Below, piece by piece: positions 3,501 through 32,208 of a DNA stretch of 64,000 nucleotides. The notes under the pieces were generated by a model. That model was not told where the DNA came from. It saw only the letters and a list, made by a program, of their open reading frames with translations, and did no database searches. The number at the start of each line of letters is the position of its first letter. Position 1 is the stretch's first letter. The stretch comes from Oculina patagonica (lineage: Eukaryota), in assembly GCF_052425735.1 (NCBI RefSeq), contig NC_135761.1, positions 46,066,001-46,130,000 on the forward strand, in the 5' to 3' direction. The position numbers and the translations under genes are program-made.

Positions 3501-3918
3501 ATGGTTAAAAGTCTTAGGGCACTTCCAACTTTTTACTTATTAAATAAATGACCTTTGTCTAGAAACCTCTCCCCTCACTACCCAATACAATATTGTTGTG
3601 TTTTCCATTCAACCCAGTACAGTGTACCTTTTCTGGTGTGCATTGATTTTATACACCAGGCCCTGGTTGTTCAAAGGGTTAGGGTGGATAACAATATCCA
3701 CCAGATAAATCACTATCTGGTGGATAGCGAAATAGTTTTTGTATGACAGTTATCCACTGGATAGCCATTTATCCAGTGGATAGTGTTATCCGCCATTTTA
3801 ACATCTCGGCTCAGTGGAGAGAAAGTAATATCATCTTAAAGAAATTAATTTGAGGATGATGGTAACCTTAAGTCCAAAATGATAATCACATGTATTGACT
3901 GTCATAATTATAACCCTG

Positions 3919-3952
<34 letters not shown>

Positions 3953-6900
3953 AAGACTAGTAGAAATGCAGTTTTGGCTAGTAGGTTTTGGACTTTCACT
4001 AGACAAAATGGCCAGTGAAAATTTCAGGCATAAGTGCAAAGATACTGCACAACAACAACAACTTACAACAAAAAAAGAAAAATACTCCGGATAAAGATGA
4101 ATACTTGGTGAAGTCGTGTCTAGATGGTTTGAGATTTTATTGGTGTGAGTTTAAGTTAAAATATGTTCTCTACCTCATGGTGAAAGAAAAATATATATAC
4201 TTGAAAAATATGGCTACAGAAAATCAGTTTTGGCTAGTGGAATCAAAGCTGTCACTAGCCACTTGGCTAGTTAGCAAAAGTTAGTCTCCAGCCCTGCCCT
4301 GAGCCCAGTTGCTCAAAGGATGGATAACGCTGACCAGTGGATACATCGCTATCCTGACCAGTGGATAGCGTACCAGTAGTTTGTTTTGCCAACACTTAAC
4401 CGCTGGATATTGATTTATCGGATGGATAGTGCTATCCACCCTTCGAACAACTGGGGCCAGGTCTAACATTTACAGTGTGTGTTTCTTTAAATATATCAAG
4501 AGTGGTGCCAGAGTGGTTGCATTTGATCAGCACCATGCTGTGTTAGTAGTGTCCAAGCCATCTCCTAACCAGCTCTTTCCTGGCTTTGGTGTTGTGAAGG
4601 TTAGTGCAAAATGTACATGTACGCATTTACATCTATATCTAATGCAATTATTGTGTTTTCCAATTATCCAGTCAGAGTTCTTTTTGATCTTGAAGATCAA
4701 AGGGAATTCTGCTCACAGGGTAGTTTTTACGTTTATTAGGGGTTTCAACATTTGTTGGTAAAAATCTTCATCCATGACAAAAATTAACATACACTGTAGT
4801 AAATGTAATTACATTGTATAAATTTTTATGGTATGATAGATTGCTGTTGTAACCTAGAGAGTCACTGAAATGCATCAATTTTGGAACAAAAAAAATCAAT
4901 ATGGAACACCACTACCGTGTGTTCACCTAAATGTACATGTTGTAGTCTGGTGCAAAAACTTTGTGAGTTGGAGGCTTCCGGTACATTAAAAAGTGGTAGT
5001 TTTCAGTAAATTTCTCACATATAACATGAGTGTTTGAGAGAGAGTGTTTGTCTCCCACCAATGTCGCCCGGGTTTGATACCTGGACCCGGCATCACATCA
5101 TTGTGGGTTGAGTTTGTTGTTGGTTCTCTTCCTCACTCTGAGGGTTTTTTCTCCGGGTTCTCCGGTTTTCCTCCCACCGCAAATATCAACACTGCTAAAT
5201 TCCAATTTGATCGAAACAGTGGATGAAGAGCCACCTTGTGGGAGTGCCACTGCAAATTCCCATTTTTATTTTTTATTTTATTTATAAGTAGTATTTTTGT
5301 TGAGTATTGATGACATGGAAAGACTCAAATTTACAAGTGTCACCACATGAAATACATTTACTATAGGTGGTATTAGCATTATAATTGGGAATATCATTTT
5401 GATGTCAACTTTTAGGTGAGCTCTCTGGATTCCAAGCATTGTGAGTATGTTCGGATCCACCAGAAGGCAGTCCGCGATGTGGCTTTCAACTGTAGGGGTG
5501 ATGGTTTGTTGTTGACAGCAAGCATGGACAAGACAGTCAGAGTCACTAGTATGCTCAGCAATACTGTTGTACAAACGTAAGTTGATAAATATCATGAATT
5601 ATAAATTTTTGTCCCATTTCTCATGGGTAATATATGTATTGTATGCAGTGATAGTTTTCTGGCATAAGGAACCTTTGATAAATGAACAGTAAACCATTTT
5701 GTGCAATTTTCCACATGTACATGTGCAATTTTCACATGCCGTAAAACGTTTTCTTTTAGTAAGTGTAATTATTTCACATTTAAACCAGTGAAATTGATTA
5801 TGGGGTAATACAGTGGGACCTCGCTATAATGAAGGGCCAAGGGACTGGCAAAATATGTTTGCTATAACAAGGTTCCGTTATGTGGAGGTTCTTTTCCATA
5901 TAATTTATTTTACTATTACCGGTACTTGGGGAATGATATTGTTCGTTATATTGAGGACTTCCCTATATAGAGGTTTGTTTAATTGAGGTTCCACTGTATG
6001 TAGTACATTGTGTTACATGCACTCTTTAAATCTTTTGTGTGTGTTTTTTTGTTTCTTATAGACATTGACTAGTAGATACATTTGTATTGTTTCACTGGTG
6101 AGATAAAATCACCATATTGCAGAAGTTATTTTTTGAAGCAGATCAGCAATGAGTAAACTTAAATAGCAGGATCTGGTCATTTTACGTTGTTATGCATACA
6201 TACACATACATACATACTTTATTGACTTTCCCCCTAGAGGCTTTTCAAAGACAATGAAATAAATACAATAATAATTTAAAACTACTTAAAACTCTAAGAT
6301 GATATTCATACTTAAAATTAATTAACTAGGATTAAGAATCTATAAAATCTTTGATAAGTTTACGTTTAAGATAAAACTTAAAAGCAGATACTTTCTCGAG
6401 ATCAAATTATGCGATCAAATGATCAATATTATATCACACTTGTAGGCTTTAGAAGAATATCAGCACTATAAGTTTTGTTTCCTGATTTTAGTTACAGTAC
6501 ACCAGTCCCTGCCTGGTCTTGTGCCTGGAACGATCATGACACTAATTACATCTACTGTGGCCTTCAAAATGGCACTTGTCTGATATTTGACGTCAGAAAC
6601 ACTGATACTTATCTCAAGAGTATCCAGAGTGCGACAGGAGGATCCTGTCCTGTTATCTCTGTCGCTCATGTGTCACCAGATCCACACAGTGCTTTGAGGT
6701 GAGTTGTGCATGCACAAAATAGGCAGATGCATTGGACAGTGAACTAAAAATAATCTGAGAAGAAAGTGTGTGATTTTATGGAATTGTAGTTTAAAATGAA
6801 TTTTAGGTCAAAATGATTAACAATGAAAATACATGTAGTTTGATTTGTATTTTTCTTTGTTTAAGGATTATGATAATACATGTAAACCTGGAATAAAGGC

Positions 6901-9900: not shown

Positions 9901-10517
9901 AATTCTGTGACGTGTTTGGTAATTAAGAAAATCCCAGGCAGGTATCAGGACTATCTGCAAGAAGATCAGCAATATTTTAACTACAGTCAACAATCCAACA
10001 AAAAGCCAGGGCTTATGCATAATAATGAGACCAAAATCCGTAATTTACACCTCTAGGCTAAGTGAGACAATTAACATGCCCCTCCAATTTATATGGGAAT
10101 CCCCACCCCCAGCGTAACTGTACCTACAATTTGCGCTACGATTAAATTTTTCATTACATCAGTATTGCTGTGTCCATGCCCTGCCCCCCCCCCCCCCAAC
10201 AATTGCTGTTCATCCCCCAAACCAACATACAGAGGCAAGGAAACATGGCAGCTATCTTATCAACTGTGTCTAGAATTGTACCTCTATCACTGGTATAACG
10301 TTAAGATGACCCTTGTTATCAGCAAGTTTTTTTTAAATTGTTTGTTGCTTGTTATTTCACATAGACTTTAATATGGAATGGCAGCAATGGAAAGCAGCTA
10401 CAGAAATTATCAAACCAAGGAAAGGAGATATTAGATGTTCTTCCCTTTGCTGCTAATGGCAGTGACTTTATGGCCTCAATTGATGAACAGAAATTAACCA
10501 TTTACAAATGGCTGTAA
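594..10517 (+). CDS. RFWD3: E3 ubiquitin ligase RFWD3 (acidic N-terminus, RING, coiled coil, WD40), 12 exons, about 659 aa
   Basis: Exons 594-1001, 1705-1796, 2372-2668, 3166(or 3169)-3307, 4501-4599, 5416-5576, 6492-6698, 7121-7218, 8293-8384, 8514-8601, 9113-9255, 10365-10517; all GT-AG and in frame (1980 nt). [38 protein letters not shown]...CPQC; WD40 motifs [43 protein letters not shown]. Confidence 0.95.
2677..2973. mobile_element. MITE with long terminal inverted repeats in RFWD3 intron 3
   Basis: ATGCACCTGTCAATGATTTGCCCCAGG ... CCTGGGGCAAACCATTGATAGGTGCAT, with internal G-run/C-run inverted symmetry; begins 8 nt after the exon 3 donor. Confidence 0.75.
3655..3812. mobile_element. Palindromic MITE rich in GGATA/TATCC motifs (copy 1)
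   Basis: GGCCCTGGTTGTTCAAA...GTGGATAAC...TATCCA repeats; related copies at about 4301-4460, 35491-35626 and 62305-62360. Confidence 0.65.
3920..4296. mobile_element. hAT-like MITE (CAGGGCT termini)
   Basis: TIR CAGGGCTCGAGACTAAC versus CAGGGCTGGAGACTAAC (16/17); flanks CCCTGG/CCCTGA resemble a 6-bp TSD. Confidence 0.75.
4301..4460. mobile_element. Palindromic GGATA/TATCC MITE (copy 2)
   Basis: GCCCAGTTGCTCAAAGGATGGATAACGC ... GCTATCCACCCTTCGAACAACTGGGGC inverted ends. Confidence 0.65.
5045..5285 (+). mobile_element. tRNA-derived SINE, 5'-truncated
   Basis: B-box-like GGGTTTGATACCTGG followed by GTGGGTTGAGTTTGTTGTTGGTTCTC body and a (TTTTTA)n tail. Confidence 0.6.
5811..5996. mobile_element. 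Tc1/mariner-type MITE
   Basis: TA|CAGTGGGACCTC ... GAGGTTCCACTG|TA. Confidence 0.75.
7285..7799. mobile_element. Tc1/mariner (pogo-like) MITE
   Basis: TA|CCGTAAATGATCTAATAAACGCCC ... GGGCATTTATTAGATCATTTACGG|TA; many subterminal GGGCGTTTATTAG repeats. Confidence 0.85.
9424..9865. mobile_element. TTAA-target MITE (piggyBac or Kolobok type)
   Basis: TTAA|GGTCATTGCCCTG ... CAGGGCAATGACC|GTAA. Confidence 0.7.
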
Positions 10518-25723: not shown

Positions 25724-28479
25724 CTGGTTCCAAACACTGAAATGCAGAATCTCGCCTCTAGATCCACAGAGAAATGCAGCCTCGAACAGCCTTACAGTTT
25801 TTATTTGTACAGAGTAAAGAGAATTGAATAAACTGTCACAAAGAGCCCCGGCTTTCAGTAGCGATGGAGTCGGAGTCCGTAAGTCGTAAGAGCGCTTACA
25901 ACTTAGCGTAAATCAAAAACTAGAGGTGTAAGTGAAGTTTTCATTTTCTTCCAATTCCGCTTCTTTTGACTCCGTACAGTGAAAACCAGATTGTCAGAAT
26001 CGCAGGCAGAAACGGAAGAACAAACCAATCACAATGCTAGTTCTCTCCGAGTACTTCCTTTCTGCTTGCGACTTTGACAATCTAATTTTCAGCGGAATAG
26101 AAAACTCTGCTCACGACTCCCTCGATCGTAACTGGATCGTAACGCTCTGCGCTTCTGACTACCGCTATAGTGAAAAAAGTGTTTAGTTTATATAATAAAA
26201 AAATCGGCTTCACTTGGTGACATGCTGGTGTCCATGATTCGTCCTGCTTAAGGTCGCGCAGGACCCTTGTATGCATTAGTATGTATTTATTTAAAGAGTA
26301 TGCACGAACTGCCGGACGACTAAAGCCGACAACAAACGAAATATTCATGAGAATGTTTGTTTGTAAACTCTTTTGTACAAGTAATTTCTAGTAATTGTTT
26401 TCAGCTTTGTGCCACGTGCGCTGGAACATAGGGAATTATCATAATTAGATTCACAGCTTTGAATATATCACACGTTGTTGTAAACATTGACTCGGAAGAT
26501 CTTCGGAAGCCTCAAAACCTGCAATTTTGTGTCCAAGTTTTCTCCGCCGATATAGAATTTCAATAGTTGATTCGCGAGGAACATAAACTTGGTGTACTCT
26601 ATTGTGCTATGACTAGAGTGAATTTTTAAATTTCCTTCTCAAAATGAAGATAGCACGTTTCAAAGTTAAGATTTCACATTTTTGCTCTCTTAGGAGCCAT
26701 TAACTTGGAGCAGTGTTTGAAATCGAAAATTTCGTTCTAGCCATAGCACAAAAGAGGTTAAGATTTATCACTAAGCTATATAATCATTTAATTTGGTGCG
26801 CTGTACTAGCTGAAAACTTGGACACAAAATCGCATTATCTGCAGTTAAACTTTAAGGGCTTGTAACATCACAGACAAAGGTCATCTCTCAGTAAAAGGAC
26901 AATCATGGTGTAATTCCATCATCCCCGAATATCCTTGTTAAATTTTATAGGAATCGATGTTCAAAATGTAGTGAATTAAAACTTTACAAGATAGCACTCC
27001 GTCAAGAAATTTGGCTAATGAATATATTAATGAGCAAGGGTCCCGCGCGACCTTAAATAAAAATTCATACCGGCATCAGTTTTTTTTAACTGAATATGCA
27101 AACAAGTCTGCTGTATACATGGACACTTTTGTACCAAAATGTGTATCTTATAATATCAAGATCTGACGAGCGCATGTGAACATTCCTGTTGCTTGTAGCA
27201 GCTCTCGTAAGCTTCTTATTCTATTGGCCCTTAAGTGTAGCAGTTGCTATTGTTTTAGGGGCTAGGCGCATTGTTCCTGTTGTTTGTTCTATTGTTCTCT
27301 CGCAAGGTAGCGAGCCATTCATGTGGAAGAGCTGCTATCAAACCTTCTGGTTACCCAAATGTTGATAATAATGTACAGTATCTTTCGCAAATATAAAGAT
27401 TCGCAAAAACAAGTCGTATCGTCCATAGGCAATAATGCTGCTTGAAGTGCAGGTTGGCAGAAAGTGACTTATGTTGATACATAAGGAAAATATCAAAGAG
27501 ATAAATTGTATTACGCTGTTAGAAGTATAAATATTAAATTTTAAGAAACTGAGTATTGTATTGTAAGTAGTGTGTTGTAAACAATTTAATTGTTATGTAG
27601 GTAGTGTAAGCAGTGTATTGCAATTGTACTGTAAGTAGAGTAAGCTTTGTATAGTAAGTAATAAGTAAGGCTTTGTATAGTAAGTAATTAGTAAAGTATT
27701 GTGTAGTAAGTAATCAGTAGTGAACATGTCACCTTGTAAGAACGTTCTGTGTGTGTTTTGCAATAAAAAAAAATAAAAAAAATATCAATAAAAAATATTG
27801 ACATATTTTTACCTTGTTTGGTAATCTGATTGCGTGTAAATGTAATTTTTGTCTCACCAAAGGCGCGTATGCCTGGGTATAAGCAGCCACCGACCTCTGT
27901 TCAAGTTTTCCGTCTATTTTGTCGCATCCTACTTGGCTCATGATATCAATTCAACCTGTATCTTTTTTTTCTGTGGTATCGAGGCCCGAGTTGTTAACAA
28001 GTCTGGAACAGTTGTTCGTTGCTGTACAAACTCAAAACTAACCAACTCCCCTGTCAGTTCCCAAATGCCAGTGGCTACATGAATATTTGCCATTTCAGCA
28101 AGTCTTTATTTTGGGGTTTCTTCCAATCTTGCTAATAAGAAGCTGATGAAAAAAATTAATTTCACCTTGCTTTATGTCCGTTATTTTATTTATACAAATA
28201 AGTTGCACAATAATTCTCTTCCCTTCACAGATTTATGTAAGTAGAATTTTAACTAAGTACATACTAGAAAATTTAGATTAAAAACTGTACACGTATCCAT
28301 ACTCCTTCTCAGGTCACTTTTACATCGCCATTGTTATCTACTATTTTTTATTACTATTACTTTTTCTATCGTACCATAAGTGTATAACCTTTAAATCCGT
28401 CAAATTGTAACTGTTTGGTTTATTGCATTGTAATGTAATGGGAACCTGCATATGTGTGTTTATCAATAAAAAAAAGTCT

Positions 28480-28755
28480 TAGAGCGATTTTCGATTGAGT
28501 ATCGTAAAACCACAACCAAATTAATCACTCTGGCCAATCACAAAGGACACAGACAGTCCAATGAACCAATCAAAACTCGAAGCAAATACATGTAGCCGGC
28601 ACGAAGAGCTGGAAATCGCGTTTTAGTGAGTCACGATTGGTTTTAGTTTTACTTCCGATTGGTTGAGAAAGTGGCGCGAGTTTTTAAAACCAATCACTGA
28701 GCGTAGCAATGCAAAACCAAAGGAAACGCGAATTACTTTCGACAGTGCAAGTGAC
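28480..28755. mobile_element. CCAAT-rich MITE (second copy at about 37017-37243)
   Basis: GAGCGATTTTCGATTGAGT.TCGTAAAACC ... AATTACTTTCGAC shared between the two loci. Confidence 0.7.
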
Positions 28756-28971
28756 AATGACTCTTATAAAATATATTTCTAAAGAAACCCCTCGCGCACG
28801 CTATATACCGCGCGCGCATTCTTTCGCTCGCGCTTATTGCCACAAACCATTGTGATGCGCAAGCTGCCCATTCAGACGTCAGGTTTTTTTTAACTCGAGT
28901 GGCATTTTCCTTGTGACATTAGAGCACAGAGAGGAGAGATTTCTTGACTGGAGTGACAATACGCGATACAA

Positions 28972-31032
28972 ATGCGCCTCGTTTTTCTTTGGAGCGGGCT
29001 TTTATGCCTTTCGTTGCTTGCCGTTTTTCCTGGCGAAGGACCAGGTAAGCTACTCGCGTGTTGTTTAATACTTAAAACAAAAATAAGCGCAGCGCGCAGC
29101 GCTACATAAGCTTACAGCTCCAAGAAGATCTTCGTTTTAGAAATGACACTGATAAAAAATATTTTCTTGCACTCATTTGGAAAATTGTGTTTGTCTAATT
29201 TGTTTCTCTGCGATACTGCCATGTAAACCACTGTTCCGTGTGTAACTGGCTAGTTATGTTTTCTAGCCTCTCTTTTAACATGTTTTGGTTTTTTTTTATC
29301 TCAAGGAATTCAAGAACACCCCCAGGGATTTAAGGGAGTGATCATCGATCGACTTCAATACTCTTGGATGACTGTAGTAAGTGTTTTGTTTAATCAGTGA
29401 GGGCGGCAAACATACTTTTTTGTAAATTTCCACCGCAAGGGTTTGTTAGAGCTGTTGCTTAGCGACATCAGTCTTCCGAACCAAGCGCGCGTGACAACCC
29501 TTGAAGTGCTCGCGCTATTTCTCGCGCCTTTTTGCTTCTCACGCATTCCTCCCCACGTGCGCGACTCGACGCTTAAAAGCGTGATTCGTGGCGCGTAATA
29601 AGCGACTGCATGCGTATAAGGTTACTTCTGATTGGACACGCAGAAAAGAATCTTCTTTCCTAGCGAAGGTTTACTAAAAACTGTTCTTGCCTAAATTGCT
29701 GATAATTGGCTTGATTTCTATGGGCCATGGGATCAGGATTATAGTGGTGGAATTTTAAAACTAAATGGGGTTAATTCATACACGGTTAGAATGGATTGCC
29801 TACTCGTTCAACTCTTGTTTTCAAACGAACGAGTTTTTTTGGCATAAAAACTCGTCGAAACAAGTTAAACGTGCACAAAACTTAAACTGAATTACGATAA
29901 CGGATGATCTAAAGTTGGTATATTTTTGTCATTCCAATCAGAAAACCGCGTACTCCTGGTACTCGTGGTACATCGAAGAACACAGTGATGAGATTTACGA
30001 TATGATCGACTGGAGTTTGGATTTCATTTTTGAGGAGAAAATCAGAGAACAAGGTTTGTAGCGCACTTTCGCCTTTCCATTTCTAATTAACCGACGTCGC
30101 TCCCCTTTCACTTTTGCTCACGAAGGGTGGGGGAGGCGAGGGGGGAGAGTGGCTTGCGTGAGCGTCGAGGATTTGCATAGCCTGCGCAGCAAGCGATCCT
30201 GGAATTTAGAAGGGAAATTGAGGCGAGGCTAAAAGGATGAAAGGAGGGGGGGGGGGGGGAGAAGAAGGAACTCTCTTTTCTCCTTTCCTGACCCCCTCGT
30301 CTTCCTTTTTTGCCCGCGCCCAAATTTTCGCGTGGCCAAAATGTGGATAACTCTGCTGGAACGCTTATTACGCAAGCAACGATTTTTGACCAGTCCCGAG
30401 TAGGAGTAAAGAAATTATAAAAACATTTTAGAATCAGGCTAAGGCGAGAGAAGAAAAAAAGCGTTTCTCTCCTTTGTGCATTGTTTTCGTTTTAGTTTGA
30501 AGTATTTCCTCTTGATCCGGCTTGATCCACGGGGGTGAGGAAAGTAGCTCTAATTGTTCTACAAACAGGAGTGCTGCGCGCAATTGAAGTCGTTTTTTGT
30601 CCACTTCTGATTAAGGTATCAATCCCAACATTCTTGAGGAGCTGCGTCAGAAGCGATTGAACAAGTTTGGCGAGTTCTTGGTGATCCTCATAATGTCAGG
30701 AGTATGTCTAAAGATGATTCGAAACGCAATCAAGAGGAGCTTTTACGAGTAAGTTCTACAATAGTGAACTACGAAATATGCTAGGGTTATGGTGTATTTC
30801 TTTTTATTCCTTATTCAAGAGTTGCTCACAGGTTTGTCGCTTAAGTTTACTCAAAAACGTCTATACCATTTACCAATCTATTTCCAGGGAGCTGAAATTC
30901 CGGCAAAAAGAAAGGCAACGAAGAGATTTCCTTAGAGGTCGGGAGAGGAGTTTACAGGATATCTGGAACATCACCATAGCAACCAACGTCAATAAAGGTG
31001 TCGGGCTTCGCGGGATGCAACGACACCATTAA
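28972..31032 (+). CDS. Uncharacterised small type I membrane protein, 5 exons, 177 aa
   Basis: Exons 28972-29044, 29306-29376, 29942-30053, 30616-30748, 30888-31032; phases 1,0,1,2 all match (534 nt). Signal peptide MRLVFLWSGLLCLSLLAVFPGEG, hydrophobic FGEFLVILIMSGVCLKMI, basic tail; TATATA at 28802 and AATAAA at 31170. Confidence 0.78.
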
Positions 31033-31345
31033 CGTTCATTTCAGCCGAAAACTTTTTGTATTATTTTGTCTGGTAAAGGTGAATCAATTTTTAAATTTCT
31101 TGTAACTACAATATAAATTCGGTGTAAGCAACGGTTGTTAAATATCCGCGTTTCTTGTGGAAAAGTGATAATAAAGATTGTGATACTAAACTATCTTGTG
31201 TTTTTTTTTCTGTCACAAATGTTAGTACCCCAACCAAGACTACAAGTCGCAGATAATTAACTGATTTAGTGAGCACTTGTGAGTTGGATTCAAATTATCG
31301 TCCTGATAAACTTGTGATTTTTCTCACCCTAAATAAGTCAGATCG

Positions 31346-31421
31346 CAACCTCATTCCCAGGGTATCTCTCTAACTGCCCCCCAGAGCGGGGAGAGAGAGA
31401 GAGACCATGGGAACGAGGTTG
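31346..31421. mobile_element. 76-bp hairpin element with perfect 9-bp TSD
   Basis: GTCAGATCG|CAACCTCATTCCCAGGG ... CCATGGGAACGAGGTTG|GTCAGATCG. Confidence 0.85.
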
Positions 31422-32208
31422 GTCAGATCGTTAATTTCTATAGATGTTGACGATATAATTTATAAACGATAACCGAAAATCCTAGTGACACGCCCTCCCC
31501 CCATTAATTCGAATTCAGTTTTGATTGGCTGTTTGGAACAAAGAATTCCTAAACGGAAGTCGAAAACGTAACAACTCTCTCATACATTCTTTTGAAACGT
31601 CATGACTGCATACATGAAGACCGGAAGTCCTAGAATCTAGGACTGGAAATCCTGTGTCCCCAGAGTCCTTTGTTTCCTCGTGCCAAGGCCCAGCCGGCTA
31701 AGAGAAACAAAAGGGCTATGGGGACGAGAATGATCGTGGCTACGTTGAAAAGCATATTTAAAACTTTCGCCTCCTTCCAACAAAACGTTCTTGTCTGATT
31801 ACTCCAAGTATGACTGCTAATATAAAAAGAACACTTAACCACAATCGCTTCTTTGGTTCTTTATTACAGTGTTTATTTAATTGATTATTGGGGAAGGATC
31901 TACTTGCTTATTATCCTGAATAATTCACAAAATCTGTTCGCGGTATTGACTATGTACAAAAAAGGTGTTGTGCTACTGAAAATATACTTCATTATGTATT
32001 CTTAAAAACACGTTTACACATACAGTATCTTTCTTTCTAATTTATGATGATTATTCTGGCAGCTCTTACATCTGTCTCGGAGATGTTCACGTCAACCTTG
32101 TTATAAAGCGGTATCTTATGTTTGGGAGTCAGTGCAGGCCCACAATCAGATGCCATCGCACGGGTCCTAACCAGTTGGTCCCTTTTGTCATTCCAATTGC
32201 TAACCTGA

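Follow-up and report, generated by a model that had tools for sequence, protein, structure and literature searches.

A transcribed five-exon gene of Oculina patagonica encodes a putative single-pass membrane protein of a family found in stony corals

Introduction

Among the described systems closest to the protein considered here is TMIE, a single-pass protein that serves the TMC mechanotransduction channel as an accessory subunit. Like the coral protein, TMIE is small, has one functional membrane helix, and carries an arginine immediately outside the membrane, a cysteine within it, and a basic tail, and the overall layout of the two is presumably similar. TMIE is not known to have a two-helix acidic ectodomain of ∼75 residues such as is predicted for the coral protein.

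The RAMP, KCNE, FXYD, and MRAP proteins offer a likeness of kind only, which lies in their small size and in a single membrane helix with one conserved face. RAMPs also have a small helical ectodomain, comparable with the one modelled for the coral protein, the gene for which adjoins a GPCR gene. RAMP ectodomains are braced by conserved disulfides. By contrast, the ectodomain described here is free of cysteine and is modelled as two helices rather than as a disulfide-braced three-helix structure. The Pfam profiles of RAMP, KCNE, FXYD, and MRAP gave no match at an E-value of 10.

The locus lies in a stretch of 64,000 nucleotides of the genome of Oculina patagonica (NC_135761.1, positions 46,066,001–46,130,000 of the forward strand), which is referred to here as the window and in which position 1 is the first letter. 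An earlier note on this DNA, made from the letters of the sequence, had proposed that five short exons encode a hidden, orphan type I membrane protein, perhaps a lineage-restricted receptor or accessory protein or a membrane-tethered precursor that is shed at a KR site. This proposal was followed up by computational analysis of the gene, its transcripts, its relatives, and its predicted product.

Results

Inspection of the window revealed five exons on the plus strand, the coding parts of which join in frame to a coding sequence of 534 nt that specifies 177 residues and a stop codon. The coding part of exon 1 (28972–29044, 73 nt, ending in phase 1) encodes a signal-like hydrophobic segment followed by a conserved PGEGPG motif. 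Exon 2 (29306–29376, 71 nt) encodes IQEHPQGFKGVIIDRLQYSWMTV, the start of the predicted ectodomain helix A, and carries the conserved pattern EH..G..GV..R, and exon 3 (29942–30053, 112 nt) encodes a predicted aromatic, acidic, and amphipathic helix B with conserved Y.W and DW motifs. The predicted juxtamembrane helix, the membrane segment, and the start of the tail are encoded by exon 4 (30616–30748, 133 nt), which is better conserved than any other exon of the family. The remaining, Arg-rich part of the tail is encoded by the coding part of exon 5 (30888–31032), which closes with a TAA stop codon at 31030–31032.

The four introns (29045–29305, 29377–29941, 30054–30615, and 30749–30887, all on the plus strand) begin with GT, end with AG, and have phases of 1, 0, 1, and 2, respectively, with pyrimidine-rich tracts preceding their acceptors. 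Reading through the donor of intron 4 leads at once to a TAA stop codon. The initiation codon is the first ATG past an in-frame TGA at 28954–28956, 18 nt upstream, and has A at position −3.

Evidence for transcription was sought in public sequencing runs, and 17–23% of the sampled words from the gene stretch, approximately the share that is exonic, were present in four runs of one study. Contigs of three same-species runs and of one run from a second organism were mapped to positions 28000–32000 of the window; the label of these runs as RNA is a guess, and they were judged to be RNA by their splicing pattern. All four exon joints predicted for the gene (29044/29306, 29376/29942, 30053/30616, and 30748/30888) were present in the RNA-like contigs of the three O. 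patagonica runs, in which the depth over the introns was zero or near zero. For intron 1, the depth was zero and the contig joint skipped 261 nt. The joint across intron 2 was found in three runs, and that across intron 3 was found in the three same-species runs and, additionally, in the run from the second organism, in which the contig differed at 5 of 115 nt. In two of the three runs, the joint across intron 4 was carried by an allele that reads CATGA at 30744–30748 (Tyr129 to His) and that also has an A>G substitution at 29344 (Ile38 to Val).

The mapped contigs also delimit the untranslated regions, both on the plus strand. The 5′ untranslated region was placed at 28938–28971, with an approximate start given that contig depth began in the bin 28938–29071 in three runs. 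The 3′ untranslated region (31033–31190) contains an AATAAA signal at 31170–31175, and the same-species contigs ended at 31186 and 31190, which is 11–15 nt beyond the signal. No contig joint linking the gene to its neighbors was seen in the mapped runs between 28000 and 32000. Spliced contigs and empty introns together form the pattern expected of RNA, and the gene was therefore taken to be transcribed and spliced as predicted. The five-exon, in-frame arrangement described in the earlier note is thus borne out by the consensus splice sites, by the RNA joints, and by identity with a RefSeq protein, and the frame is far beyond chance.

No Rfam match was found between 27500 and 32500 of the window. 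Two high-depth repeats flank the gene and are not copies of one element.

The spliced product is identical, letter for letter over all 177 residues, to RefSeq protein XP_078364364.1 (LOC144648773, uncharacterized, O. patagonica). GenBank holds a second version, KAL9978478.1 (hypothetical protein ACROYT_G015998), of 130 residues, which corresponds to residues 1–130 of the window protein. This model reads through the fourth donor to the TAA and so misses the last intron and the 47-residue tail. Given that the RNA contigs splice out intron 4, the GenBank model is truncated. Neither record states a function, and a literature search with the locus names returned no paper. The gene is not hidden, as had been supposed, because both databases already hold a version of it.

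The features that had been listed for the protein were all present. An N-terminal hydrophobic segment occupies residues 1–19 (Kyte-Doolittle mean over 19 residues of 2.1), and YSW occurs at residues 43, 52, and 55. The predicted ectodomain (residues 22–101) contains no cysteine, 15 Asp and Glu residues as against 8 Lys and Arg residues, 4 tryptophans, and 5 tyrosines, and has a pI of 4.6; its acidity is modest, the 15 acidic residues being spread over 80 positions without Asp-rich runs. A furin-type motif, RQKR (residues 96–99; 30645–30656, plus strand), stands immediately N-terminal to the membrane segment. The latter comprises residues 103–120 (FGEFLVILIMSGVCLKMI; 30666–30719, plus strand), gives Kyte-Doolittle means over 19 residues of 1.7–1.9, and lies inside a long modelled helix. 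The tail has 15 Lys and Arg residues in 57 and a pI of 11.6. A putative type I topology is suggested by hydrophobicity and charge alone, namely by the hydrophobic N terminus with its short polar end, by the small residues before position 26, and by the far more basic C-terminal side of the membrane segment.

Structure prediction with AlphaFold2, run with 18 and 30 alignment rows, gave all-helical models with a low mean pLDDT (57 and 61, respectively), the fold of which is not reliable past secondary structure. The helices in these low-confidence models span residues 32–51, 53/56–79/84, and 89–171. The hydrophobic moment was maximal over residues 57–78, within helix B. A predicted complex of two copies of residues 26–135 scored 0.00, with a chain pLDDT of 44–46, which speaks neither for nor against self-association.

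Relatives of the window gene were found in O. patagonica itself and in other stony corals. The ortholog in Orbicella faveolata (LOC110047521) has five exons of 73, 71, 112, 133, and 148 nt, and its product is identical to the window protein at 135 of 177 aligned residues (76%). The RefSeq model of this ortholog is truncated at the N terminus; at the locus, exon 2 is present twice and nearly half of the sequence reads N. The O. patagonica genome contains three genes of the family, the other two being tandem paralogs that lie ∼18 kb apart on another chromosome (contig C13). One of these was rebuilt to 163 residues from exons of 73, 71, 106, 133, and 109 nt with the same phases as the window gene. 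The other is LOC144637165, which has its own first exon ∼11 kb upstream. Exon phases were identical wherever they were checked, that is, in the window gene, in the Orbicella ortholog, and in the C13 paralogs.

Further members include LOC114956374 and LOC122947643 of Acropora millepora and unnamed proteins of Acropora muricata and Montipora foliosa, and members are also carried by ENA and Tara coral-metagenome contigs. Two of the metagenome contigs (L015 and L016) carry apparent orthologs of the window gene, with an exon 1 that is 72–80% identical. An uninterrupted Acropora open reading frame of 168 residues was present on a Logan contig from one public sequencing run, which indicates that this paralog is expressed too. 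Apart from the Orbicella ortholog, the members are 35–50% identical to the window protein. All of these proteins, the Orbicella ortholog included, share a layout of a signal segment ending in PG.GPG, then EH..G..GV..R, Y.W, DW, and LR.K.L.K.GE, and finally a predicted membrane segment with a small-residue patch and a cysteine. Unlike the window protein, the relatives beyond Orbicella lack the extra YSW and have short, unrelated tails, and the Acropora members have one ectodomain cysteine and carry RRKF where the window protein has RQKR.

To delimit the family, a profile of 43 positions was built from exon 4 of the three O. patagonica copies and scored against 1.84 billion representative proteins. 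Ten matches were obtained, two of them full-length, and members scored at E-values of 2e-23 to 1e-5. All of the named members are from stony corals. This profile was the one exhaustive search, the others requiring shared five-residue words, and as far as these searches reach the family was found only in stony corals. The lineage restriction that had been proposed is supported within that reach. The protein is not the orphan it had been taken for, given its Orbicella ortholog under purifying selection, its two O. patagonica paralogs, and its relatives in Acropora and Montipora.

Comparison of the Oculina and Orbicella coding sequences by the method of Nei and Gojobori gave a dN/dS of 0.24 overall, which indicates purifying selection on the window gene. 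The membrane segment had the lowest ratio (0.14) and the tail the highest (0.30); the ectodomain, at 0.20, is under purifying selection as well, which suggests that it is no mere spacer. Exon 1 is 52–80% identical across paralogs and orthologs, and conserved residues in this N-terminal part include a tryptophan in the signal segment and PG.G.G at its end. Identity between paralogs is 41–45% in exon 3, the length of which is variable (81 nt in L015), and 48–58% in exon 4. Across the three O. patagonica copies, exon 4 has 18 invariant columns; its conserved features are LR.K.L.K.G(E/N), followed by the membrane segment with its small-residue patch, a Cys or Ser, and L..(I/M/F)R. Exon 5 is 55% identical in Orbicella and weakly kept in L015. 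A search of the genome with exon 5 matched only the exon itself, and the tails of the paralogs are unrelated.

The motifs that had drawn attention in the window protein proved less general. Other members have HHW, SFW, or HTC at the position of the first YSW, and the middle one is an insertion of three residues that was found only in the window protein, the Orbicella protein, and one fragment (P0017). The three YSW motifs are thus present as described but are not a feature of the family, the middle one being an insertion of the Oculina-Orbicella type. RQKR is shared by Orbicella, both C13 paralogs, and three fragments (P0002–P0004); elsewhere its place is taken by RRKF (Acropora), RRKC (Montipora), RRQH (L016), RQQR (L015), or RQVR (L014). 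The predicted juxtamembrane and membrane helix is the best-conserved part of the family; neither RQKR nor the triple YSW nor the tail is family-wide.

The flanking genes were as had been described, the upstream open reading frame encoding a rhodopsin-type GPCR and the downstream frames a collagen. In Orbicella, two unnamed genes on the minus strand lie just downstream of the ortholog, and on a Tara contig a gene with a VHL domain lies downstream of the family member instead. When the O. patagonica genome was searched with the two neighboring proteins, the collagen and the GPCR, no relative of either was located near the C13 paralogs. A functional link between the window gene and its neighbors is therefore unsupported, and the GPCR and the collagen look incidental.

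Comparison with known families agreed with the earlier statement that no family is recognized. Pfam searches at an E-value of 10 with the full protein, its C-terminal half, its relatives, and all 30 alignment rows returned only sub-threshold noise (ERCC3_RAD25_C and Nucleoside_tran), and feature searches of the ESM Atlas gave no usable match. When the first AlphaFold2 model was compared with the AlphaFold DB clusters by Foldseek, nothing scored below an E-value of 0.6 and no TM-score exceeded 0.35.

Among all PDB sequences, the family profile had a single marginal match, to TMIE of Caenorhabditis elegans (7usw chain D; E-value of 0.067, 16 bits). The match extends from the juxtamembrane arginine through the membrane segment, including its cysteine, to the first basic residues of the tail. 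None of 30 family sequences matched the Pfam TMIE profile (PF16038, cut-off of 27 bits), even at an E-value of 10, and a genome-wide scan with this profile touched neither the window gene nor its paralogs. When the best PF16038 locus of the genome was aligned with the family, hhalign returned a probability of 0.35 on a scale of 0–100 over eight columns. Membership of the TMIE family was rejected on these three counts.

Discussion

The window gene encodes an expressed stony-coral protein of 177 residues that is probably, with a likelihood of roughly 0.55, a membrane-resident accessory or adaptor protein, a putative function that is read from the pattern of conservation alone. No part of the family is more constrained or more widely shared than the juxtamembrane and membrane helix, so that packing of this helix with a partner is the most likely way in which the protein works. 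The variable length of the ectodomain and the unrelated tails of the paralogs are a further basis for this reading. The protein would remain in the membrane as a small accessory or adaptor subunit that associates, helix to helix, with a second membrane protein. Helix A and the amphipathic, acidic helix B would form a small hairpin that faces outward, and this two-helix ectodomain may provide the surface that is presented to the outside or to the partner. The basic juxtamembrane helix is predicted to run straight into the membrane segment, and the Arg-rich cytoplasmic tail is modelled as a continuation of the same helix. The features conserved in the juxtamembrane and membrane helix, namely a polar Glu or Asn, the small-residue patch, and a Cys or Ser, also belong to the basis of this reading.

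Release of the ectodomain is an alternative reading. As a membrane-tethered precursor, the protein would be cut by a furin-type convertase after RQKR (residue 99), and the freed acidic, aromatic peptide of ∼75 residues would be the active product, such as a signal or a matrix component. RQKR fits the consensus R-X-K/R-R and is retained in Orbicella, both C13 paralogs, and three fragments, a minimal R-X-X-R persists in L015 and L014, and the purifying selection on the ectodomain would suit a released product. On the other hand, the P1 position is occupied by F in Acropora, C in Montipora, and H in L016 rather than by arginine, the site stands six residues ahead of the hydrophobic core and inside a modelled helix that runs on into the membrane segment, and the membrane helix, which a pure precursor would discard, is what the family conserves best. 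A precursor is thus unlikely, and the shedding at KR that was once proposed is weakened; release at RQKR within the Oculina-Orbicella lineage is possible. A broader proposal, that the family arose in stony corals as an accessory subunit that modulates a coral-specific receptor, channel, or transporter, for instance in calcification or symbiosis, with an ectodomain that senses or docks and that a convertase could release in some lineages, is quite unlikely as it stands. A direct part in skeleton building, with the acidic ectodomain displayed on calcifying cells or shed as a matrix protein, would explain both why members were found only in stony corals and the adjoining collagen gene. All named members do come from skeleton-forming corals, the ectodomain has its low pI of 4.6, and downstream neighbors include the collagen in Oculina and the two unnamed minus-strand genes in Orbicella. 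Against this, the acidity is modest and free of Asp-rich runs, no database name ties any member to skeletal matrix proteins, and the C13 paralogs have no collagen relative nearby; a skeletal role is judged quite unlikely.

Descent from TMIE would make the protein a very distant member of that family. Its positive signs are the profile match to the nematode chain and the presumably similar layout, and a score of 16 bits across a membrane segment can arise from composition alone; set beside the failure of PF16038 to detect any of the family sequences or their loci and the negligible hhalign probability, kinship is highly improbable, and TMIE is treated here as a likeness of layout. The proposal that there is no working protein-coding gene, the locus being a transcribed non-coding one or the frame a chance one, could draw on the lack of a recognized domain and on the low confidence of the structure models. 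It conflicts with the dN/dS of 0.24 against Orbicella, with the exon lengths and phases that are kept there, with the same phases in the paralogs, and with a frame that is open across several coral genera, and it is close to refuted.

The accessory or adaptor reading stands beside a set of earlier ones that have been weakened, namely the orphan status, the YSW repeats, the shedding at KR, and a partnership with the GPCR or collagen neighbor. The RefSeq model was already known and is correct. What is added here is modest and consists of the confirmation of the five-exon model by RNA, the truncation of the GenBank model, and an outline of the family.

LOC144648773 joins the many small membrane proteins that are lineage-restricted and uncharacterized, and it has so far no tie to a process. 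Genes that are restricted to stony corals are candidates for the specialities of these animals, such as the building of a skeleton and life with symbionts. A conserved, expressed family of putative membrane proteins without described relatives would merit a look in a coral cell atlas or a tagging experiment.

Transcript Models and Expressed Variants of LOC144648773

The GenBank model of the window gene, KAL9978478.1 (130 aa), stops at a TAA (window positions 30749–30751) that is made by read-through of the fourth donor. Because the RNA contigs at the fourth intron give the spliced form only, KAL9978478.1 is without the true 47-residue tail.

Two expressed allelic variants were present in the same-species runs X1 and X3, one being a change of TACGA to CATGA at 30744–30748, which converts Tyr129 to His, and the other an A>G change at 29344, which converts Ile38 to Val. 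Run X2 carries the window sequence at both positions. A single 300-nt contig from X1 (28724–29024; depth 19), which has 14 differences and one gap, spans the promoter region and the beginning of exon 1. This contig may come from a divergent allele whose start lies further upstream, or it may be stray genomic DNA.

On either side of the gene, the summed depth of RNA contigs reaches thousands to tens of thousands (28402–28803 and 31484–31751), and both stretches show numerous partial contigs and odd joints. The flanking stretches resemble repeats of high copy number with transcription throughout the genome. That they are copies of one element was ruled out, the sole sequence that they have in common being a short inverted match (28557–28592 versus 31502–31537).

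Paralogs and Relatives in Other Corals

Inspection of the tandem paralogs A and B on another O. patagonica contig revealed an extended tetranucleotide tract, (TACC)n and (TGCC)n, in the final intron of both, immediately upstream of the last exon (L010, about 3640–3850, and L011, about 4670–4940, minus strand). In paralog B (LOC144637165; L022 7711–7824, minus strand, and L011 6417–6494), exon 1 lies ∼11 kb upstream of exon 2, whereas the corresponding intron is only ∼260–580 nt in the window gene and paralog A.

In the Orbicella faveolata ortholog locus (L013; 21.7 kb, of which 9273 positions are N), exon 2 is present twice with its flanks (3886–3957 and 9968–10039). The doubled exon is probably an assembly duplication, and it accounts for the N-terminally truncated RefSeq model XP_020608931.1.

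On two scaffolds from Tara coral metagenomes, the family member has as its downstream neighbor a gene encoding a VHL domain (PF01847; L016 4620–4976 and L017 2954–3310), whereas the downstream neighbor of the window gene in Oculina is a collagen gene. Gene order near members of this stony-coral family therefore varies among corals.
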